Notes: generated from the letters alone by a model not told the origin. Shown: positions 38,101 through 64,000, counted from the stretch's first letter. The stretch is DNA of 64,000 bases from Trichoplax adhaerens (GCF_000150275.1 NW_002060945.1:8696011-8760010), one strand, 5' to 3'. Translations and numbers: made by a program.

Positions 38101-40721
38101 GCATATTTAGTCCTGACGGGAAAGAAATTTTAGCCCAAGGTTATGATGGAGGATTACATGTGTGGAAAAATACTTCAGTCGAGGTATAAATTATTTATAA
38201 ATTTTCAGCTATTGGTAAAGATTATCTATGATAACTTTATCGTTGAGAACCCTCGCTAAAATTTTACAATTACAGGATGAACAATGGAAGCCTCAAGTGA
38301 CCGTTACTGGCCATTTTGCTCCAGTCCAGGTATTAGTTCAGTACTTATTATTATCATTTCAGTAAGTAAAGCATGTTTGGCTTTTTACTGTTATATGAAT
38401 TCAACTCAAGGCGTAACATAAAGTGCACTAATTTAATTGGCAGGATTTTGATTGGGAAGCATCACAAGGCTCTTTCCTAGTAACTGTTAGCTATGATCAA
38501 ACCACTAGAGTTCATGCACCATGGATTCAACAACAGAAAGAAGTAAATATCATTTCGTATGCATCATGCCTTCAGTTGCAAAATATGTATATCTACGATT
38601 ACTAATTTTAGCAATTTCCTTGATCTTCAGTCGTCCTGGCACGAAATTGCGCGACCACAGATTCATGGATATGATATGCAATGCGTATCGCTAACTGAAT
38701 GTAACCAAATTGTCTCAGGCGGAGAGGAGAAAGTAATTGGATCGATTACTATTTATATTATCTTAACAATATTCACTTCATTAAACTTTAATTTGCACTT
38801 AGGTTATTCGTGTATTCAATTCGCCAAAATTGTTTTCCAATACCTTGTCGGAGATTAGCCGAGTACAACTAGAATCTCTTAAAATTTCATCTGTTGTAGT
38901 AAGTATCAGCTTTACTGTGCATGTATCTAGGTTGCAGGTTCACATTAAAATGATACAACTATTCGATCTAATTTTAAGACTAGTACAGCTGCTTTAGGGG
39001 CAAGTGTTCCATCTTTAGGCCTATCAAACAAGGCAATGTATGACGGTATGCCAATTTTGTGGTTATACCTGGTCTTGTATGCAATGATTCAAATGTAAAG
39101 ATTGTTGATTACAGATCAAGAAAATCTTACAAGTAGTAATGAAGACTTTTCAGACCGGTTTAACATGATACCAACCGCATTTAAACCTGTTGATCTTAAA
39201 GGTTAAGATTACTACTAAATTTAAAGTGCAGTACCTAGTATAGCTTCCTTTTAATCTAATAATCCCATTTATTAACTTTATACATGCGACTTGTAGAACC
39301 CCCAACAGAATTATATTTACAACAGAACACACTCTGGCCTGAAATTCAAAAATTGTACTGTATTTTTTCATTTCTTTTATAGTAATAGTCTGATAAATTT
39401 TGAACATTTCATTCCTACTCCTTCATTTTCATAACTTCGTTATTTTACTGTAGGTATGGACATCCGTATGAGCTGTTTTGCCTAGCGTCTAATCCAAAGA
39501 GGCAACTTATTGCTTCAGCCTGCAAGGTTTATTCATCATATTGCTATACGATTACATGGATTTTTTGTTACAATTAATTGTATAGTTAGTAACTTTTGGT
39601 CGAAATTTGACAACAAGGCACGCAAACCCGAACATGCTTCTATCATTATTTGGGATACTCAGACATGGCGTCAAGCCTGTGAACCTTTATTATGTCATAA
39701 TTTGACTGTTACTCAAATGGCTTTTTCACATAACGGTGATTGGTTGTTATCGGTATCAAGGGATCGCGGCTGGTCACTGCATCAATTTACTAAATTGAGT
39801 AATAGTAAGGCGACAAAAATTTCTTGTTGTTTTTCTCAAGAAAGATATAACAAACTAAGCGTAATATCTTAAAACAGGAATATCATGTAAAAATGTTTAT
39901 CATGCCGCTTACAAAACCAGTAAGCATTCACGTATTATCTGGTCTTGTTCTTGGTCCCATGACGATAAATACTTTGCAACCGCATCAAGAGATAAAAAGG
40001 TACAACATACTAATCATTGTGATATAAAAGGAGTACTTGTATAATATTCTGGGATACGCGCATTCGCATTACATTTTAAATTTATGCTTACATCTTCAGG
40101 TTATTATATGGCATCAATCACAAAACAATGCCTGGATTCCCGCTTCAGTTGCATTAGAACTTTCAGATTCAGTTACTGCAGTGGATTTCGCTCCGGAATG
40201 CAGCAAAAGTGGAAAGTTAGTTCCAATTTCGTTATACTCTCAGATACAACTCCTTCAATAAGCCTTTTGTATTTTTAATTTATAATTGGCCTATTCCGTA
40301 ATCCGTACAGTACTATTTGGTGATTATTAGAGCTATGATTATACAATTTTACTTAACGCTTTTTAGGTACATCCTTTGTATAGGTCTTGATTGCGGTAAA
40401 ATCGAATTTTATACGTGGAATTTGGTGCAGCCCCATTGGCAGAACTGTTTTTCACTGCCCGAAAAGTATCTTTTCAATAGTTTCTGTATCGCCTACATTA
40501 TTCGTATACTATCTTTGCATTTTACTGGATTATGACGCCTTAATAAGTATATCAGTTATAATCATTCACTAACGGTGAAAAGGATCAGGTGGAGACCACT
40601 TTCGAAAGACATGAAAAGCGAGATTAAATCTGGATATGAGAATCAGACACTCCAAGTTGGCTGCTGTAGTACTGACCACTCTGTTCGTATTTTTACATTA
40701 GCATACAATGACTTCAGTTAA
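35189..40721 (+). CDS. ELP2: Elongator complex protein 2 (WD40 repeat)
   Basis: Exons: 35189-35350, 35582-35666, 36076-36134, 36566-36701, 36803-36907, 37002-37078, 37284-37353, 37429-37575, 37673-37771, 37866-37957, 38055-38183, 38276-38329, 38444-38542, 38631-38732, 38803-38898, 38979-39045, 39115-39201, 39297-39354, 39454-39526, 39618-39804, 39878-39999, 40100-40215, 40367-40465, 40556-40721. Motifs: [112 protein letters not shown]. Confidence 0.95.
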
Positions 40722-44892: not shown

Positions 44893-47800
44893 CTAGAAAT
44901 TTCTAACATAGCTACTGCAGGGTAAGCCACTCATAACCACTTTACCAGATTCATTGAAAGGTTCATAGAAAGTAGATCTCATAATTTTCTGGGTTGCCTA
45001 AAGGTTGACATTGCGTGGAGAGTAGATGTTATTAATTTTAAAATGGTAATGAAGGCATATTGCTGCGTCATGAAGGAAGAGTGAGTCGTACAAGCAGTAA
45101 ATTATATTTAGTTTCTACAGCTGTGAAGAAAAAACTCACCGAGTAAATATTATACATGCACGAGCTGGCATTCGCTTTTAAGAAATGGTCCGTGAAAGAT
45201 TTTCCATCGCTGTAGTCGTCAACACCTGAGGCTGCATAGACGGCAACATTATCGAGTTTAGCATGGCGGATTTTCTTCACCAGTATGCCGGCATAGCTTT
45301 GATCAATTAGCAAAACAATTAATCTGGCTTTTCTGCATCGAATCAAGGAAGTAACAATTTCGCTAGGAGAATAACGTTCATAATTTTCAGCTTGACCATG
45401 TCCATCATGATCCCACATTAATATTGAACCATCACTCATGGTTGGACTGTTCATGTAAATGAATAGTGTGTAGACATTGCAAAATTGGCAGAGTCTTTTA
45501 ATCGCATCTTTAACAAATACATCGCGATTAGCAGGTCTTGCAGTGTCTATATGATTGCCATCACCGTTTACTGGTTAAATAGACAGGAATATATAATTAT
45601 GTTAGGCATGTACACATTATTAATAGATATTACTACGCTTTGAGTTATTTTTGATCTAAAATTCATATATTGTATCAATCAATTAGGAAAATAGCGTTGT
45701 GAAGAATCCTTGAAAAAGAAACAAAAGGGTCTATGCAGGTAACTTATTTACATGACAGGACTGCCATAAGTGAAATACTGCAATAGTAGTTTTAGAGATT
45801 CTGTCGAATTAATGATATCAAAATTTATCTAGGTTAATAACTCCGTCGCTATCGTTATTTTCAGTGTTAGGGTTATGATCCTAATAAACTATTAAGAGGT
45901 AACGCAACAGCTATCTATCGTAAACATGTGAATCAACGACGCGATTTAGTAAATCATTATTATAACGGATATGAAATTGGTTGAATTACGGATACTGGTA
46001 AGTTCTACAGAATGACTTCGATTATGCTATACTTATTTATATGCCTACAGTTGCGATCTATGGGGAGATTTCCAAGTTTGCAAATAACTTGTCCAATTTT
46101 TAATATGCGGAGTGGGTTGAAAAGTTCTATGTCAACCCTTCATTGGTTCATTAATTATACGTACAATGATATCATCAAGCATAGGCTGCGGTTATGATCA
46201 GCTTCTTTTTGAGCTATTTACAGTACAGTACTGTCATGGGTGAATTCATGAATCAGTCTATAGGCGGAATAGGGGATTACTTTGCCAGTAAAATATTCCC
46301 AATGCAAAGATAGTCCAAGATATTGCCCTATCTTTAGTAGAAGGTATCACGTATTTCCGATGGTCCTTGTTCTATTCAATTAAGCTTATTGAAAAACAGC
46401 GTGTGGGATCTTCTCAGTATGATCAGATTGGCTATATAATTGACTTTATTATCTTCTCGCATAGATTAGCAAATAATAAACAAAAATGAAGGCCGATTTA
46501 CGTAGTACTGTAGAGTACAGTATGTTTGATATTGACTGATTTCATCTTTACTATTGTATACGTAATCCGTCAGTAAACTATTTGGATTGTTCTCTAATTC
46601 TAATTAGTATTGATTGAATAGGCGATCGATTAAAGTCAATTTAATATTGTGTTGACTGTAGTTATTTTGGTTGCTAATAGCAAAAACATTGTAACACTAT
46701 TGCGCTAATGAAGAGACGTTATTTCCAGTTCATTACTGCAGTATAGCCGATAGTCTTCATCACGACCTTTGTTGTATAGCCTGTGATGCATGGTTATTTC
46801 GAAAATTTTATAGCTAACACTATCGCCAATTCCTGTTGTATCCTAGGAGTTGTAGGTAGAAAATATTGACTGGCCAACAGATTACAAAATCACCAGTGAT
46901 ACAGCTTATATGATCTAATATACGAGTATATCAACATGCGCTAAGAAAAACATCGGTAATATCATTGTCCTATTAATCAAAGATCCAATAGCCGTTGGTT
47001 ATTGGAACATCTAGTTAGTTTTATATTGTACGCGTACGTCTATTTCTTCATTTGAAATAGCATCCATCAAATTAGCAAATGGCGAGATAACGAGACGTAA
47101 TTGGGTATTTTTCTGGAAAGTAATTTATCCCTTTGGCCTTGATAGACATTAGCCCATGCATAAGATACACACACTATCGCAAACATGGGATTAGCATCCA
47201 TCAAATTAGCAAATGGCGAGATAATGAGACGTAATTGGGTGTTTTTCTTAAAGTAATTTATCCATTTGGCCTTGATAGACATGCACGGATACGAACAATA
47301 TCGCAAACATGGGATTAACATCAATCAAACTAGCAATTGGCGAGATATTGAGATGTAATTGGGTGTTTTTCTTGAAAGCAACTCATCCCTTGGCCTTGAT
47401 AGACATTAGCCCATGCATACGATACGCACACTATCGCAAACATGGGATTAACATCCATCAAATTAGCAATTGGCGAGATATTGGGTCGTAATTGGCTGTT
47501 TTTCTTGAAAGTAATCTACTCATTTAGCCTTGATAGACATTAGGCCATGTATAAGATACGAATAATATCGCAAACATGGAATTAACATCAATCAAATTAG
47601 CAATTGGCGGGATATTGAGACGTAATTGGCTGTTTTTCTTGAAAGTAATTTATCCCTTTGGCCTTGATAGACATTAGCCCATGCATACGATACGAATAAT
47701 ATCGCAAACATGGGATGATTGTCATTGAATAGCTGACCACATGGAGTTTGGGTGACAAACAACCGGTAGTTGTTTTGTGGTTGGAAAATGGTTGAAGCGC

Positions 47801-50772
47801 AACAGAAGAATGATTTGTGAAATGACGTGTAGGCTGACGATAACGTGATACAACACAGAGATAGTGATGCTATCCAATATTCTATTGGTGGATTAGCATG
47901 TTATCCGATAGGGTGTTATTGGTTGGCATTTGACGTCGCAAGATAGTGTAGGAGGAGGAGGATGATGATCAAACTTAGACATACTGTACGGTACAACATT
48001 CTCTTGATCGCGTCTGTCACATGGGAATAGTGCGTCCTCTCTGATGGACCTTTGGAAACTAGATACCTGAAATTCAATAGTACAGTATTATATTATTTTA
48101 GATCACGTCTGTTGCATGACAATTCTAGTCTTGCTTCATTCAAGTTGAGGCAATGAATGATGCGCTAAGGCAACCACTAGACGCGTGGGTTGTAGGTCTT
48201 TTTTTTTTTTAGTAATCCATGGCTGAATGAAGCACTGGTGATGACTTGTGACTGAATGACGTTTCTCAACATGTTGTTGGATGATATCACGTTGACGTGA
48301 ATGCTAATCAATCTTGTCAATGGACGACGATTCAGTTATCAATGTTATCAGAGGTAAAACAACTTCACATCTGTCAAGTCATTCATCTATCCTTGTCACC
48401 CATGACTCACCAAACTTCAATCGCAGATGCAATTCACTCCACTACATTGTATATCGGTCACTGATGTTTTATCCTACGCTTCTCCACACAAAAGGTCATT
48501 CGTCATCAATGACTCACAGCCGATCGGTGTCAATACGCATTTTTCAGGCGTCACTCCAATCGGGATCGTTGCAGGCACGTCAATTGAACCACTCGTATAC
48601 GCTACAGCCATAGCGGTTCTCCTTACTTTTTTATTCTTTTTTTTTATGGCTACAGCAGGTGCCTTGAAATTGATCCTTGATCACTCAAAGCAATGCTCGA
48701 TTGGGACAAACTTGCAACCCCAATTTTCCCTTAATCTTATTCAGGCTAAATTGTTCAAATGAAACCTTGGAATAATTGGATCGAATCAGCTTATGATCGT
48801 TCGTATTTTGAGGTGTTGGATGCAAAGAGAAGGGATCGATAGACTATGCTACTCCTGTTCTATCGACGGAGTCTATTGTAGATTGAAAATTACCAGTGTC
48901 TATAAGGTTTGAAAGCAAGAAAAGGATAGCAGTTGCTGCATATTTTGGATGCAAAGAGAAGGGATCGATAGACTATGCTACTCCTGTTCTATCGACGGAG
49001 TCTATTGTAGATTGAAAAATACCAGTGTCTATAGGGTTTGAAAGCAAGAAAAGGATAGCAGTTGCTGCATAGTTCTAAAACACATTGGAACTAAGACGAT
49101 ACAATGCTTGATCATAACAGAAAGTATGGTCAGTGGTCACGTTGATGTGAATATGCTGTACTTACAATCAATGACTCCATAATGGCCAAAAAATGTCTGT
49201 ACATGATTCACAGGATAGCGATGAACTCGAGTCAGTGCTTGCCACATGCGTCTTACATTCGATTCGGCATGAACGGAGAGTGTTTGATCATTCCATCCCG
49301 ACGATAATAGAATGGCATAGTTCTCCGTTGGATTATATTGCCTCGGACATTCTAATGTTCGTTGAGCTTGAATAGACGCTCTCCCTAAATGACATGTACC
49401 CGAATTCTGGCAATCTTTAGGAGTAGGAATAGCGTCTCTTAGTGCTACTTCACGACACTGACCAAATCCAGAAAAATTACTGTAACACAATAATTGTTGA
49501 CTAGTATATAAGTCGTTGGCGTAATAAACCAGCGGCAAAATGTCCGTATCGCAACGTCGTTTATAATCTTTATAGCTTTCTCTTTCGTTAGGGCATTCGC
49601 TCTTGGTAATCATAATTAAACATTCTTTGTTGCCTACATTACAATTTGAATCATAGGAGAATAAAGTGAAAATTGAATCGTTGCCAACAAGTGATGCACA
49701 ATTTTCTATCTACTCAATGAATATGTTTGCAGAACTGTCATTAACAAACAAAGCAAATTCAAATGTCAAAGTCAAATTAGACAATTTAAAAAATGAGCGT
49801 GAAAATAGTTCAAGGCGACTAAATATCGTCGATCAAGCTAGTTAGTAGTGGTTGAGCTTTTACAGTAATCGCTTTGCAATCTCATTAGTCAAAAATAGCG
49901 TTGAAATTGGACCGCTATGACTTCAAAGGCAATGTTAAAAAGTACTAATACGTGCAATACTCTACGTATATGCTGCCAGGGTGATATTTTGATCAATGTA
50001 TATATATATACTGTATATAGACATTACGACTACGATACATTGATTACTTGTAGGCGGAATTAGCAATAACATTGTACTTGTCCTTTTCCAGGTTTACATC
50101 ATGCTTGACTAGGATAAATTTATAATTGACTGTTAACTCGAATTCCAAGTATCTGGTTTTTTTTTTATCAGTCTACGATAGCTTATGATCTATCCTAACA
50201 AATGTACTGTACTGTACATCAAAAGCTTAATTTGATCAATTTTCAAAGGTTATATACGCCTATGCTTATTACGCCACTGTCAAGTAGAAGATCCTTCTTT
50301 TTAAATAATCACTATGATTGCCAATACCAATGTATTGGCCATGACGAGCTCGACATTCTACTTGACCCAAATTTCCGTGTATAGCAAATATGAACAGTCG
50401 ATGACCAAAGGAAAGCTTAGGAAACGGATCGATGACAATAATGGCATCATTCAAATATTTCTGACTCTCATACTGCTTACGAGGCAATACAAGACGATAT
50501 TTTTCTGGATAACTGGAGTTTCCTTGATGATATGCCAAATAAATGTTCATATCAGATCTTTTGGTGACTCGAAATTTACGACAGTTTCGATGGCTCATTA
50601 ACATCTGACATTGGATAGAATAGATGTAGTTGTAGGCAACATTTGCCCATTTCTCTCGATGATCTGGTAATGTTTGTAAATTTGACTGAATAACTCCTGC
50701 AATAACTAAGTTAGCTTGCCAAGTTGACCAACATGCTATCACCAACACAATCCAGGCTTGTAGCGACGACAT
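44893..50772 (-). CDS. Uncharacterised secreted protein (~482 aa): signal peptide, Cys-rich N-domain and inactive legumain/GPI8-like (peptidase C13) domain
   Basis: Four phase-compatible exons 50772-50328, 49633-49166, 45570-45140, 44997-44893 (1449 nt, stop TAG) with canonical splice sites. Signal-peptide-like MSSLQAWIVLVIACWSTWQANLVIAG. C13-like elements in the expected order: NYAILLSSG, NVRRMWQAL..HRYPVNHVQTF, TLFIYMNSP, LIVLLIDQSYAG, NVAVYAAS. Fold assignment is by motif recognition, not a search. Confidence 0.8.
47059..47715. repeat. Tandem array D, ~133-bp unit, 5 copies (intron 2 of the C13-like gene)
   Basis: Unit CATC(C/A)ATCAAATTAGCAA...GGCCTTGATAGACAT...TATCGCAAACATGGGATT starting at about 47059, 47193, 47318, 47451, 47584. 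Confidence 0.9.
48816..49071. repeat. Tandem duplication E, ~129-bp unit, 2 copies
   Basis: TTGGATGCAAAGAGAAGGGATCGATAGAC...GCAGTTGCTGCATA at 48816 and 48945, nearly identical. Confidence 0.9.
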
Positions 50773-58200: not shown

Positions 58201-60032
58201 AATAGATTAATGCTACCTCTAAAATTGTATTAAGTAGACGAATGATGTTTATTGAACTAGCAACTACATTACATCAAAATAGTATAACGGTAGAAAGGTA
58301 GGCAAATACAAAAGTACGCTTAAGTATAAAGAACGTTACCTCTATGGTAGTATCAGTATCTTCGAAGTCGCTGCTAGTGTCTATATGTAGGAAGATGGTA
58401 AGAAATAAAAACATTTATAATTACAGTGTCGTAGCTAACATTTTGAAATACCCATTGAGCAGTATTGAGGATATTAGAATGGCAGAAAACTGTCATGGAC
58501 AGCGTATTATCGCCTCATAATACGACTGACTGGTATTCTGGATTATTTCAGAGTGATGACATATCCAAGAATGTAAGGTCGTAGCATCCGCTCACTAAAC
58601 GTTTGATCCCATTCTTATTATCGTTTCATGACGCAACAGCGCCATGTTGTTGACTAGTTTATGATACGTTTTCATTGATAAAGCTTAGTCTGTCATTACG
58701 TAAGTTTATGATAATGTGGCATTAAAGTGATGTTTTTTTGTAGGAAGAAGAATGCAGCTATTTAGCGAGATATTCATTTATATTGTTAGCGTATACAACG
58801 CCTTTCTGTATAGTATCGAGTATTGACAAGATTATTTTGAAAGCATTTTCTACGCGTAGGTTATCACCAGTTATCACCATGTAAAAAACGGTGTCGATGA
58901 AGATGGCTTATGGAAAGGTGTCCTAATTGTAATAGACAATCCATTCATGCTATGTAAGCGTATACTGTAGCACCCCAATGCGTTGGTTGAGAATTTCAAT
59001 TTTGGATCGTATATCATTATAATCAGTCTATACTACGTCGAAAGATGCAAGTCATGTCCACTTGTCTAGTAGAGTACAACCGCGACTACGGTATAATCAT
59101 TAGGTTTAAATTTTTATTTTTATTTGCAAGTAAAATTGCCTCGTTGTAAACTTCAAGTTGGCCTTGAATGTGTACTCAGTGGCAGTCAGTGCGTACACTT
59201 TTTTCAATTCTGAGTTGATATTGGATTCCTAAGGTGGATCGATCCGCATACTGGTTGCACAAACGTATTATACTGGTATGTAGAAATGATTATGGTTACC
59301 ATGATGACGATGGACATGTTTTTACTGGAGGTTGTAGCAACAGAGGGGTCTGAAACATTGAAGATTTTTTTTCTTTTGTGCTATGTCTAGCTGCAATGTA
59401 GGGCATCGTTTGTTTGTCTTGTACAATACGCTAGAACAGTTGGAATGGAGTGATCATTACCATTCGTTAACCCATTGTAAAAGCAGCAATGGCTGCAATA
59501 TTGAGGGTTTACCATCAATTTCAATCATGTCATTGGGTGCCTACGTCGCTATTGGATCATGCCCAAACGACTGCAATGTTGTATTTTGATTGTCCATGTA
59601 TGCTGGCTGCATCGCATTTAGCACTTTGTCTAGACGATGCGAACGCCATTCTGTTGCACAAACGAATAACTCATTGACTACAGTATACGAAGAGAGTAGA
59701 ATGAAATTGTAGAGGAATTTCTATTGGGCATGAAACGGCAGCAATGATTGGCTCTGCATTGAAAATCAAGCTGAACATGGCGATAGCAATAGCGCCGTTG
59801 ATAATCTGCACGTTGCTACACATGGTCAATCAATCAGTATGGTTTTACCTTCCTCCGTTGTAGCAGTTTCTTCACGTTCTGGAAATTCATCCTCGTCATG
59901 AATAAATTCTGAAAATTCCTCATCATCATCACTGGGAGTAGGAGCACCACTGTCACCTTGGGCGATGATCGAAGACAAATTAATCAACAGCAAGAAGGAT
60001 ATCAAAATGAACAAGGATCGAGGGACAGCCAT
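55212..60032 (-). CDS. CCDC47: PAT complex subunit CCDC47 (ER membrane-protein chaperone, calumin)
   Basis: Exons: 60032-59849, 58380-58340, 58098-58057, 57581-57522, 57345-57215, 57125-57079, 56961-56843, 56772-56707, 56594-56493, 56393-56286, 56187-56105, 56032-55968, 55889-55780, 55698-55621, 55463-55374, 55283-55212. Signal peptide and acidic lumenal region, then VPVHL, one TM helix, LLESNFAVVGDDG, YSLWCTG, LKKRHDL, MDSFVFAV, LHFSDQY, HAQRQEAAQQRREEK, EEDPDK, KKKNPKMKQM. Confidence 0.93.
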
Positions 60033-60307
60033 GATTGCATCAACGTTGCAGCATGCCAAAGCAACGATGCCACTGAGACTGCAGTCCAATCACCCATGGT
60101 ATACCTACGCATTCGTTCCGTCCAGTACGCTCCATTGACTGTGCTGTCATGCTTGGCAGCGGATTTGGCAGACTGTCGCTTTCTTGTTGTACTGTATATA
60201 ACACTACACGGATCGACGCACTGACGCGTGAGTGTGATTGACCTCGTTGGCACTGACGGACGCCATCGAGAGCTTGGAACAAAGTTCATGGTAGTCTTTT
60301 TGCAATA

Positions 60308-61162
60308 GAGTACAGTACTATCCTGTACAGCGGTTTCAGTAATACCGGTCAGACAGTATGAACATGATGTACAGTACACTGGACGAGACAAAAAGACGAC
60401 TCACTCGCTCAGACAGACGGACTTTTCTTTGCAATGGAGCCTATCAATCTGGAAAAATGAGTATTTGAGATTTTGAGTAGAGTACAGTACTGTCCTGTAC
60501 AGCGGTTTCAGTAATACCGGTCAGACAGTATGAACATGATGTAGACTGGACAGGACATCATGGACTAGGCAAAAAGACGACTCGCCCGGTCGGACAGGCG
60601 GATTTTTCTGAGCGAAGGAGCCTATCAATCTGGAAAAATGAGTATTGGAATACAGTACAGTACTGTCCTGTACAGCGGTTTCAGTAATGCCGGTCAGACA
60701 GTACTATACTGTATACAGTTGTACAGTACAATCTTGGACTAGGCAAAAAGGCGACTCACTCGCTCGGACAGGCGGACTTTCCTTTGCATACTGTACTGTA
60801 TAGTGTACAGTACAGTATAGTGTACAGTACAATCATTGTACAGCGGTTTCAGTAATACCGGTCAGACAGTATGAACATGATGTACAGTACACTGGACTGG
60901 ACATCATGGACGAGGCAAAAAGACGACTCGGCCGCTCAGACAGACGGACTTTTCTTTGCAAAGAAGCCTATCAATCTGGAAAAATAAGTATTTGAATACA
61001 GCACAGTAGTGTCCTGTACAGCGGTTTCAGTAATACCGGTCAGACAGTATGAACATGATGTACAGTACACTGGACTGGACATCATGGACGAGGCAAAAAG
61101 ACGACTCAGCCGCTCAGACAGACGGACTTTTCTGAGCAAAGGAGCCTATCAATCTGGAAAAA
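60308..61162. repeat. Tandem array F, ~172-bp unit, 5 copies
   Basis: Anchor GTACAGCGGTTTCAGTAAT at about 60325, 60497, 60670, 60838, 61016. Confidence 0.9.
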
Positions 61163-61659
61163 TAACTACCTACTGTGGTATGGATCTTCCGCGTCTGTTT
61201 TCCAAATCACTGGTACTCATTTTAATAGCATGAACCGTCTTATAGAACTATCTCCGAGCGGAATTGAGTAACAGAGAATAAGATTTAGCGTCATACGTAC
61301 TACTTCATTTCGAAAAAATCAGTCCATTCAAAGTTGACCATCTCTATGTCAAGCTATATACAGTTACAGTATAGCATACTAAAAGCAATGTCATAACCAA
61401 GAGTTTGACACACTATTTTGACGGTAATGTCTGTCCATCCAAGAGTGATCAGCCCCCAGTCCAAGTCTTCTTCTAGTAGTGTACTGTACAATACTGGAGT
61501 ACAAATACAGTAGTACAAACTACAGTACAGCCCACTGCTGTCTGAAGTACCGTACTGCACACAATCGCTCGGTGTCGTTCCGTCTGTCCAAGCGGTACTT
61601 CTTCTGGTACAAAGGAAGGAAAGGGACCTTCGAGTGACGCGCATACAGTACAGTAGTCA

Positions 61660-63423
61660 GTAGGTGACTGTAGGGACTCGGGACAAGATACAGTTCGCTT
61701 CGACCCAGTGTAGTCTTGTAGCAATTAGACCTAAGTTCGGTTCGGTTCAAAATCTTTATGATCTAGACTAGCAATCTATAGCAACTGCTGTCATACTGTA
61801 CCGCAGTCAGAAGTTGGCACTGGACAGATGGACACTGGACAGGTGACTGTAGGGACTAATGACAAATCCAGTTCACTTCAACTCAGTGTAGTGTTGTAGC
61901 AATTCGACCTGAGTTGGGTTCGATTCAAAACCTTTGTGACTAGCGATCTACAGCAACCACTGTCATACTGTACCGCAGTCAGAAGTTGGCATTGGACAGA
62001 TGGACATTGGACTGGTGACTGTAGGGACCGGTGACAAAATCCAGTTCACTTCGACTCAGTGTAGTGCTGTAGCGATTAGACCTGAGTTGGGTCCGGTGCG
62101 GTTCAAAACCTTTGTGACTAGCAATCTACAGCAACCACTGTCATACTGTACCGCAGTTAAAAGAAAAGTTGGCATTGGACAAATGGACACTGGACAGGTG
62201 ACTGAGGGACCAGTGACAAAATCCAGTTCACTTCGACTCAGTGTAGACGTGTAGTGCTGTAGCGATTAGACCTGAGTTTGGTTCGGTTCGGTTCAAAACC
62301 TTTGTGACTAGCAATCTACAGCAACCACTATCATACTGTACCGCAGTCAGAAGTTGGCATCGGACAGATGGACATTGGGCAGGTGACTGTAGGGACTAGT
62401 GACAAATGCAGCTCACTTCGACTCAGTGTAGTGTTGTAGCATTTAGACCTGAGTTGGGTCCGGTGCGGTTCAAAACCTTTCTGACTAGCAATCTACAGCA
62501 ACCACTATCATACTGTACTGTACCGCAGTCAGAAGTTGGCATTGGACAGATGGACACTGGACTGGTGACTGTAGGGACCGGTGACAAATCCAGTTCACTT
62601 CGACTCAGTGTAGTGTTGTAGCAATTCGACCTGAGTTGGGTCCGGTTCGAAACCTTTATGACTAGCAATCTACAGCAACCACTGTCATACTGTACCGCAG
62701 TCAGAAGTTGGCATCGGACAGATAGACATTGAACAGGTGACTGTAGGGACTAATGACAAATCCAGTTCACTTCGACTCAGTGTAGTGCTGTAGCGATTAG
62801 ACCTGAGTTGGGTCCGGTTCAAAACCTTTGTGACTAGCAATCTCCAGCAACTGCTGTCATACTGTTACCGCAGTCAGAAGTTGGCATTGGACGGATGGAC
62901 ACTGGACAGGTGACTGTAGGGACTAATGACAAATCCAGTTCACTTCGACTCAGTGTAGACGTGTAGTGCTGTAGCAATTAGACCTGAGTTGGGTTCGGTT
63001 CAAAACCTTTGTGACTAGCAATCTCCAGCAACTGCTGTCATACTGTACCGCAGTCAAAAGTTGGCATTGGACAGATGGACACTGGACAGGTGACTGTAGG
63101 GACTAATGACAAATCCAGTTCACTTCAACTCAGTGTAGTGTTGTAGCGATTAGACCTGAGTTGGGTCCGGATCAAAACCTTTGTGACTAGCAATCTCCAG
63201 CAACTGCTGTCATACTGTTACCGCAGTCAGAAGTTGGCATTGGACGGATGGACACTGGACAGGTGACTGTAGGGACTAATGACAAATCCAGTTCACTTCG
63301 ACTCAGTGTAGTGTTGTAGCATTTAGACCTGAGTTGGGTCCGGTGCGGTTCAAAACCTTTGTGACTAGCAATCTCCAGCAACTGCTGTCATACTGTACCG
63401 CAGTCAGAAGTTGGCATTGGACA
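61660..63423. repeat. Tandem array G, ~172-190-bp unit, ~10 copies (satellite-like)
   Basis: Anchor GACTAGC(A/G)ATCT at about 61766, 61938, 62116, 62306, 62483, 62660, 62832, 63013, 63185, 63363. Confidence 0.93.
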
Positions 63424-64000
63424 GCATTACTCTGGAGCCAACGGCTGGAGTCGACTGGCAACAACGTCAAGATTAATTTTTGATCCCTTTGGAAGGAAAT
63501 TTACACTTATGGCTTCCCAAAGTGATAATCAATCATGTATCGTACACATTATGGTCGTTGGATTTCATCACCAATATGGAGCTGAGGTAGGTAGAATGGA
63601 AGCCATTTCTTTTTCGGTCAAAGGTAGCATCAGTGGGTCATTGACCATACTGTACTGTACTGGAAAGGTTCAATGCATTCTTGGTTGACGATCTTTGAAA
63701 GCCTTGTTGACCAATGGAGACAGAGTTGAATGATCCTCATGTAGTTGGGGTTAGGATTCTCATTCGGTAGGATAGGATAGGATAGGTTACTCCCATATTT
63801 TACAACTCTACGATGCCAATAGCGATTGGCATCGTAGACCGCCAGCGACATGACAGCAAGGATAGTTGTCTTGCATTCACTGACGACGAACTCCCATCAA
63901 ATACAATCGCTTCCATGGTAGGGTGCTTATGGTTCCACTGTGCATCCACCATAGCGAATGGGATCATCGGGATCATTCCAAGAAATGACAGTACAATAGG

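Follow-up and report, generated by a model that had tools for sequence, protein, structure and literature searches.

Gene Structure of the Locus

The window analysed here is a stretch of 64,000 nucleotides from Trichoplax adhaerens (GCF_000150275.1 NW_002060945.1:8696011-8760010), and this study concerns a gene on its minus strand between positions 44893 and 50772. The predicted product is a secreted member of an unnamed animal protein family whose C-terminal part resembles a C13 (legumain-type) peptidase, with proline and serine at the positions of the catalytic histidine and cysteine. Six-frame translation showed long open reading frames (ORFs) in three frames of the minus strand, which were joined by script into four exons separated by GT-AG introns. 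The features of the locus are listed below.

50328-50772, minus strand: exon 1; ATG at 50770-50772, hydrophobic leader (residues ~10-28), and first part of the N-terminal domain; donor GTATTG
50401-50430, minus strand: codons for DPFPKLSFGH; the family consensus is DPxPxxxFGH, a motif common to the bacterial C13 relatives
49166-49633, minus strand: exon 2; Cys-rich segment with 8 Cys, then the strand-helix-strand that opens the C13-like domain (NYAILLSSGWN ... VQTFFG); acceptor TAG, donor GTAAGT, phase 1 at both ends
45571-49165, minus strand: intron 2, 3.6 kb; two tandem-repeat arrays, no match to the family profile within
45140-45570, minus strand: exon 3; core of the C13-like domain with the pseudo-active-site strands and the EF-hand-like loop; donor GTGAGT
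45443-45445, minus strand: Pro codon at the catalytic-His position (LFIYMNSP), from column alignment with bacterial relatives
45377-45412, minus strand: 12-residue EF-hand-like loop DHDGHGQAENYE, lying between the 'His' and 'Cys' strands; predicted to bind Ca2+
45296-45298, minus strand: Ser codon at the catalytic-Cys position (LLIDQSYAG); the column is Cys in bacterial relatives
44893-44997, minus strand: exon 4; short C-terminus (... NES ... GLPCSSYVRNF), stop TAG at 44893-44895; acceptor TTTAG, phase 0

The joined exons encode 482 amino acids with no internal stop, the exon phases (1, 1, and 0) are compatible, and every acceptor AG follows a pyrimidine-rich tract. The joined product served for the counts of length, stops, cysteines, and sequons, and homology searches were run exon by exon. 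There are 17 cysteines, 11 of them between residues 28 and 245, and four N-glycosylation sequons (NSS, NFS, NAS, and NES). The only strongly hydrophobic 19-residue stretch spans residues 10-28 and resembles a signal peptide, and a hydrophobicity scan found no C-terminal hydrophobic tail in the 482-residue product. The initial annotation of this DNA had described a four-exon ORF of this length with an N-terminal leader, no transmembrane or glycosylphosphatidylinositol-anchor tail, 11 cysteines in the N-terminal part, and these four sequons, and every one of these features was recovered.

The acceptor of exon 3 was placed at 45572-45571 (...TTTAACCAG). A nearer acceptor at 45509, giving a product of 461 residues, was ruled out by the orthologue alignment and by a family-profile match reaching 21 residues further upstream. 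The 21 residues restored by the upstream acceptor (NGDGNHIDTARPANRDVFVKD) align with the family block YPAxxKLxIRxHI. Because the profile match begins at residue 12 of the exon 3 ORF and agrees with the orthologue alignment, the upstream acceptor is considered the right one. Bacterial contamination was ruled out by the spliceosomal introns, the animal-type motifs, and the animal-type position in the tree.

An Uncharacterized Animal Family

A phmmer (HMMER) search with exon 3 over 1.84 billion representative proteins returned 76 proteins in two groups. The first group consisted of animal proteins of ~460-560 residues, all labelled 'uncharacterized' or 'hypothetical' and with no precomputed Pfam domains, and many of the fish members bear the name of zebrafish si:ch211-67e16.11. 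The initial annotation could name no family for the protein, and neither the orthologues nor the literature supplied a name. Members were found in amphioxus, Ptychodera, and Saccoglossus; in sea urchins, starfish, sea cucumbers, and a crinoid; in Ciona and Styela; in rays, many teleosts, turtles, and lizards; in a chiton, bivalves, gastropods, and octopus; in Lingula and a nemertean; and in a spider, bugs, and Artemia. Five multi-stretch matches (P0042, P0051, P0059, P0069, and P0073) matched the DxDGDG loop only and were treated as repeat proteins, not as relatives.

A profile hidden Markov model (HMM) of the family was built from 16 animal sequences, none of them from the Trichoplax genome. 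Exon 1 matched positions 10-137 (E = 2.7e-26), exon 2 positions 135-284 (E = 3.8e-26), and exon 3 positions 297-434 (E = 1.4e-35), so that these three exons follow the full-length family in collinear order. As the profile was built only from the orthologues of other animals, the collinear matches indicate that the exon ORFs are more than chance. The match of exon 4 was weak and not significant alone; its 'GLPC' aligned with the family 'GAPC'.

At the family positions conserved in at least 93% of sequences, the window protein keeps 52 of 67, and Cys245 is among the 15 that are changed. Asp246 of the family is lacking as well. It keeps 11 of the 12 conserved cysteines of the N-terminal half. The family signatures DPxPxxxFGH, SGGW, [LM]N[SG]P, WDxNxNGxxDxxE, and DQS[YF]xG read DPFPKLSFGH, SSGW, MNSP, WDHDGHGQAENYE, and DQSYAG in the window, respectively. 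Identity to members such as XP_070564940 (Ptychodera), XP_035688975 (Branchiostoma), XP_014252962 (Cimex), and LOC593876 (Strongylocentrotus) was 30-39%. Like the window protein, these have in collinear order a leader, an N-terminal domain with DPxPxxxFGH, a Cys-rich segment, and a C13-like domain, together with the NSP, EF-like loop, DQSYxG, and GxPC motifs. Judged by this sequence agreement, the window gene is the placozoan member of a pan-animal family, that of the zebrafish si:ch211-67e16.11 orthologues.

Bacterial C13 Relatives

The second group of phmmer matches (E = 1e-8 to 6e-4 with exon 3) consisted of prokaryotic multidomain proteins from metagenomes that carry hhYTSNHG and DQCYSG. 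They pass the gathering score of the Pfam Peptidase_C13 model PF01650 (23.4-33.1 bits against a cutoff of 22.8), with no C14 match listed. Their C-terminal secretion and adhesion modules include Por_Secre_tail, FlgD_ig, PKD, TIG, dockerin, and IPTL-CTERM. A genome scan found them in Krumholzibacteriia, Pyrinomonadaceae, Ignavibacteria, Eisenbacteria, Pirellulales, and Desulfopila, all annotated as hypothetical.

The animal profile detected the bacterial proteins with E ~1e-44, and hhalign of the animal and bacterial alignments gave E = 4.4e-38 over 303 columns. Homology between the two groups takes in the N-domain motif and all of the C13 domain, and both have the SGGW, LLWD, EF-like loop, and DQxYSG blocks. 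Unlike the animal family, the bacterial proteins keep the catalytic His and Cys, carry the C-terminal sorting and adhesion modules, and lack the animal Cys-rich insertions. The ESM Atlas placed exon 3 among bacterial Peptidase_C13 clusters (score 0.92), of which 92-99% was PF01650. Single exons gave only noise against Pfam (Sap1_N and Lipoprotein_15, E > 0.1) and, by phmmer, against the PDB. The animal and bacterial profiles gave non-significant matches to PDB sequences (E = 0.03-2), nearly all of them legumain-type; the bacterial profile also matched two Sgk3 kinase chains. In these non-significant profile matches, the exon 2 block aligned with the first strand-helix-strand of plant legumain-type enzymes.

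Among active enzymes, these comparisons place the family nearest to a subgroup of secreted bacterial C13 peptidases bearing NHG and DQCYSG rather than to legumain or PIGK. The profile evidence attaches the family to C13 over other clan CD families, and does so only via the bacterial relatives.

The bacterial branch itself is spread over at least 6 phyla of environmental bacteria and is unstudied. Its proteins, of which one is encoded at NZ_CP050700.1 3784319-3791536 in Desulfopila sp. IMCC35008, begin with a DxxPxANFGH domain and have acidic DxDxD loops, the NHG and DQCYSG catalytic motifs, and varied C-terminal modules.

Residues at the Catalytic Positions

The catalytic columns were read from an HMM-guided alignment of 178 sequences, 19 bacterial and 159 animal-type. 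In the His column, 16 of the 19 bacterial relatives have His, which pairs with the HG of asparaginyl ligases, and 155 of the 159 animal-type sequences have Pro. The Cys column is Cys in all 19 bacterial relatives (DQCYSG); the animal-type sequences have Ser (140), Asn (14), Thr (3), Gly (1), or Ala (1). Not one of the 159 has His or Cys at either catalytic column. A spacing of 48 residues separates His from Cys in the bacterial proteins and Pro from Ser in the animal ones, and among the 113 full-length animal members the Pro and the Ser are conserved at 98% and 95%, respectively. The alignment thus indicates that catalytic His is replaced by Pro, and Cys by Ser, as a change fixed across the animal family.

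The initial annotation had placed the Pro at 45443-45445, which is exact, and the Ser within 45287-45304, where its codon was found at 45296-45298. It had also asked whether NSP and DQS are invariant among orthologues, and their conservation proved to be family-wide. The window protein thus lacks the catalytic dyad of C13 and is classed as a non-peptidase homologue. As Asn stands at the old Cys position in 14 members, a nucleophile there appears not to be needed. No animal-specific invariant His able to rebuild a dyad was found among the conserved positions; the conserved His residues are either common to the bacterial enzymes or located at the legumain S1 His position. At the columns of the legumain S1-pocket pair after the first strand (R44/H45), weak profile alignments gave Arg in 57 and His in 88 of the 113 animal members, Val-His in the window protein, and Arg-Tyr in the bacterial relatives.

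Fold of the C13-Like Domain

The fold was modelled with AlphaFold on the Ptychodera orthologue from a 16-sequence alignment (predicted local distance difference test score (pLDDT) 76.6, predicted template modelling score 0.80). Foldseek placed PIGK, human legumain, and plant asparaginyl endopeptidases/ligases (AEP) on top, with E = 1.5e-8 to 1e-6 and probability 1.00. VIA-align gave Z scores of 19.7 for Arabidopsis metacaspase 4, 19.4 for legumain, 19.2 for PIGK, and 19.2 for OaAEP1, with superpositions of ~207-215 residues at 2.7-3.1 A (2.7 A over 207 residues for legumain). MALT1, caspases, gingipains, separase, and C11 enzymes followed lower in the list, all on model residues ~243-490. These residues of the Ptychodera model form the alpha/beta/alpha caspase-haemoglobinase fold. 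With the hhalign link to the bacterial enzymes, the orthologue model bears out the C13/caspase fold that the initial annotation had read from the order of motifs, and by sequence and by this model the C-terminal ~240 residues are a clan CD, C13-type caspase-haemoglobinase domain.

Compared with legumain and PIGK (MEROPS C13, PF01650), the window family shares the fold (Foldseek E = 1e-8 to 1e-7), the strand-helix order, and the first strand-helix-strand sequence block. It differs in the loss of the catalytic His and Cys, has only ~13-16% identity, and is not detected by PF01650; the window family has an N-terminal extra domain and an EF-like loop, whereas legumain has a C-terminal LSAM prodomain. 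The c-FLIP protease-like domain (Z = 12.9) and the Raptor caspase-like domain (Z = 12.1) likewise keep the fold without the dyad. Both are intracellular proteins from other branches of clan CD, whereas the prediction for the window family is a secreted, disulfide-rich protein of C13 descent.

EF-Hand-Like Loop

The loop comprises the 12 residues after the LLWD strand and has the consensus DxNxNGxxDxxE. Of the 113 full-length animal members, 112 keep Asp at position 1, Asn/Asp at positions 3 and 5, Gly at position 6, and Glu at position 12. At position 9, 92 of the 113 have Asp and most of the others Ser or Glu. The window protein has the pattern of Asp1, D/N/S at 3 and 5, Gly6, and Glu12, as do 107 of the 113 animal members, though its position 5 is His. 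All 19 bacterial relatives keep positions 1 and 12 and have D/N at position 3, and a sub-threshold Pfam EF-hand_6 match fell on the loop of one of them (P0071). The PROSITE EF-hand pattern differs from the loop at positions 8 and 13. These residues point to a probable calcium site, at the level of prediction, inherited from active enzymes.

N-Terminal Domain

In DPxPxxxFGH, residues D106, P107, P109, F113, G114, and H115 are 96-99% conserved in the 113 full-length animal members, and all six are present in the window protein. The hhalign alignment starts upstream of the C13 domain and pairs the animal VLVLDPxPxAxFGH with the bacterial 'MIDD.P.ANFGH'. Because it covers this motif block, the N-terminal domain appears to have been inherited together with the protease domain. 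The Cys-rich stretches between the N-domain and the C13-like domain had no bacterial counterpart in the alignment and are an animal-specific insertion. The 'unrecognised Cys-rich domain' of the initial annotation is therefore to be divided: its fold is still unrecognised and its Cys-rich part is specific to animals, but it includes an older N-domain common to the bacterial proteins.

A model of the N-domain was obtained from the paralogue described below, where the domain lies in a single exon (pLDDT 81). Foldseek found no structure matching it at E <= 0.001. By VIA-align, the best match was a DUF4467 protein (Z = 5.6), followed by cystatin-, NTF2-, and PepSY-like chains (Z = 3-4.5), all below a meaningful level, and exon 1 had no usable match in the ESM Atlas. 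A cystatin-like roll is a weak lead from this model.

Placozoan Paralogue and Tree

In the genome scan (105.6 Mb, 1,414 contigs), one lineage-specific paralogue was found at C1338:13890-15578 (+), intact and with ~32% identity over the exon 3 region. It keeps LNSP and VDQSHS at the pseudo-active-site positions. The equivalents of exons 1 and 2 form a single uninterrupted exon in the paralogue, which implies intron gain or loss between the two placozoan copies. In a tree of 135 columns, the bacterial and animal sequences were split with 100% support (SH-aLRT), the animal clades followed taxonomy, and the two placozoan copies were sisters with 87% support. As the tree follows the animal phylogeny and the intact second copy keeps NSP and DQS, purifying selection is indicated.

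The same genome has canonical Peptidase_C13 genes at C1414:350567-353689 (-) and C1413:4433630-4433987 (+), with PF01650 exon scores of at most 47.6 bits. Their presumed products are legumain and/or PIGK, and they are distinct from the two pseudo-enzyme genes. A faint match to the family profile was also seen at C1411:527534-527632 (+) (E = 0.005, positions 258-290, the LRxxGFxxxNI block), which may be another clan CD-type gene or chance.

Proposed Function and Alternative Explanations

We propose, with a probability of roughly 0.6, that the gene encodes a secreted, non-catalytic, calcium-dependent extracellular binding protein derived from a C13 peptidase and belonging to an unnamed animal family. 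Secretion is suggested by the leader, by the sequons, and by the mature cysteines being even in number (16), and the product would be disulfide-rich and N-glycosylated. Peptide cleavage would have been lost in the animal family, and the conserved loops around the former active site would act as a non-catalytic binding module. Since the EF-like loop is preserved from the bacterial enzymes, binding would probably be calcium-dependent, through this loop next to the former catalytic His strand. The bound partner may be an extracellular peptide or protein. The N-domain, inherited with the C13 domain, may have been kept as a partner of the groove, in the manner of a prodomain.

A wider proposal is more tentative, and we consider it possible at well below even odds. 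The family would be an ancient and hitherto undescribed class of extracellular pseudo-proteases in placozoans and bilaterians, derived from a bacterial-type C13 peptidase plus N-domain (possibly transferred into the animal stem), whose groove and calcium loop form a calcium-dependent peptide receptor or carrier. If true, this would add to animal extracellular signalling or matrix a new component that is seemingly lacking in mammals.

Several observations weigh against the proposed binding protein. The family Cys245 is not present in the window protein, which ends after GLPC, ~40 residues short of the others, without GCQNLPxxxW; HMM and pattern searches of window 38-45 kb and of the paralogue locus did not find the C-terminal GCQNLP motif. 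In the predicted calcium loop, the window has the His at position 5, and the paralogue departs from the pattern with Glu at position 3 and Gln at position 12. A conserved specificity pocket is doubtful, because the S1 Arg column is Arg in only about half of the animal members and Val in the window. The modelled folds are only those of the Ptychodera orthologue and the paralogue N-domain. PF01650 had no match on the window exons and none at E <= 1 at this locus in the genome-wide scan, and the animal orthologues fall below its cutoff, with one of eight reaching 17.8 bits against 22.8. Because PF01650 misses both the animal family and the window, membership of C13 is only transitive, through the bacterial relatives. 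The secretion, calcium binding, inactivity, and ligand of the protein are predictions.

Among the alternatives, the one that survives best, though unlikely, is that the protein acts on genuine C13 enzymes (legumain or the PIGK transamidase) as a regulator or decoy, pairing with them or capturing their substrates, comparable with c-FLIP for caspase-8. Canonical C13 genes are present in the same genome (C1414:350.5-353.7 kb and C1413:4.43 Mb), and clan CD pseudo-enzymes that regulate active paralogues exist, c-FLIP itself being in the fold list. The nearest active kin are bacterial, however, not animal legumain or PIGK. The interfaces for a legumain dimer or a PIGK partner need not persist. The compartments also differ: the family is predicted to be secreted, whereas legumain is lysosomal and PIGK resides in the endoplasmic reticulum membrane.

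Less probable still is that the protein remains a hydrolase or transpeptidase, with the Ser as nucleophile and, for example, the FGH His or the His after the first strand as general base. Most members have Ser at the Cys column, the DQxYSG context and nearby loops are conserved as in the active bacterial relatives, and His115 and His264 are well conserved. Such a mechanism agrees poorly with the Asn of 14 members and the Thr, Gly, or Ala of others at that column, and with a nearly universal change of His to Pro. The conserved His residues also occur in the dyad-bearing bacterial proteins or sit at the legumain S1 position, and hence are not animal-specific replacements.

We regard as equally improbable that the domain belongs with another clan CD family, such as the calcium-dependent metacaspases (C14B), more than with C13. 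Metacaspase 4 was the top structural match, tied with legumain; DQCYSG resembles the metacaspase motif DSCHSG; and a calcium loop is predicted here. Against this, Pfam puts the bacterial relatives in Peptidase_C13 above threshold and lists no C14 match, and Foldseek ranks PIGK, legumain, and AEP on top. The PDB sequence matches of both profiles, non-significant as they are, were nearly all legumain-type, and the ESM Atlas clusters were almost entirely PF01650.

A decaying or mis-assembled gene copy with no functional protein is very improbable, for the shorter C-terminus without GCQNLP, the changes at Cys245 and 14 other conserved positions, and the absence of an identical protein among the 1.84 billion representatives (a library that may leave out the source genome's own records) are set against four open exons with canonical GT-AG sites and matching phases, 52 of 67 conserved positions kept, including NSP, DQS, DPxPxxxFGH, and the EF-like loop, and an equally intact paralogue.

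Significance of the Family

The zebrafish gene name si:ch211-67e16.11 was mentioned in no paper found in the literature search, and no description of the family was found in the literature on C13/legumain-type pseudo-proteases, non-peptidase homologues, and clan CD pseudoenzymes. Pfam has no model for the animal family. The proteins themselves are already known from public databases; the novelty lies in reading the family as a dead, secreted, calcium-loop-bearing branch of C13 with active bacterial relatives, including the placozoan member. For annotation, this concerns a nameless family, ranging from placozoans to fish and reptiles, which the standard C13 profiles miss. The present analysis supplies a predicted fold, a probable origin among dyad-keeping bacterial C13 peptidases, a putative pseudo-enzyme status, and a testable calcium site.

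Dead proteases that last for hundreds of millions of years are usually binding or regulatory proteins. If the product is the secreted, non-catalytic binding protein proposed here, its occurrence in an animal without nerves or muscles and in vertebrates would make it a tractable candidate for an old extracellular function, with zebrafish as a direct knockout model. The active bacterial relatives, which combine the N-domain, the calcium loop, and the C13 domain, represent an unstudied branch of the legumain family.

Other Features of the Window

The two arrays of intron 2 lie at 47061-47716 (134-bp unit, 5 copies, 85% matches) and 48816-49071 (129-bp unit, 2 copies, 98% matches). In six-frame translation, the first of these gives rise to repeated 'NPMFAIVCVSYAWANVYQGQ' pseudo-ORFs. 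The G+C content of the window is ~30%, with 45-47% at 60001-64000. WD-repeat-like ORFs at 38559-39872 (+) suggest a multi-exon neighbour gene on the opposite strand, downstream of the pseudo-legumain gene.

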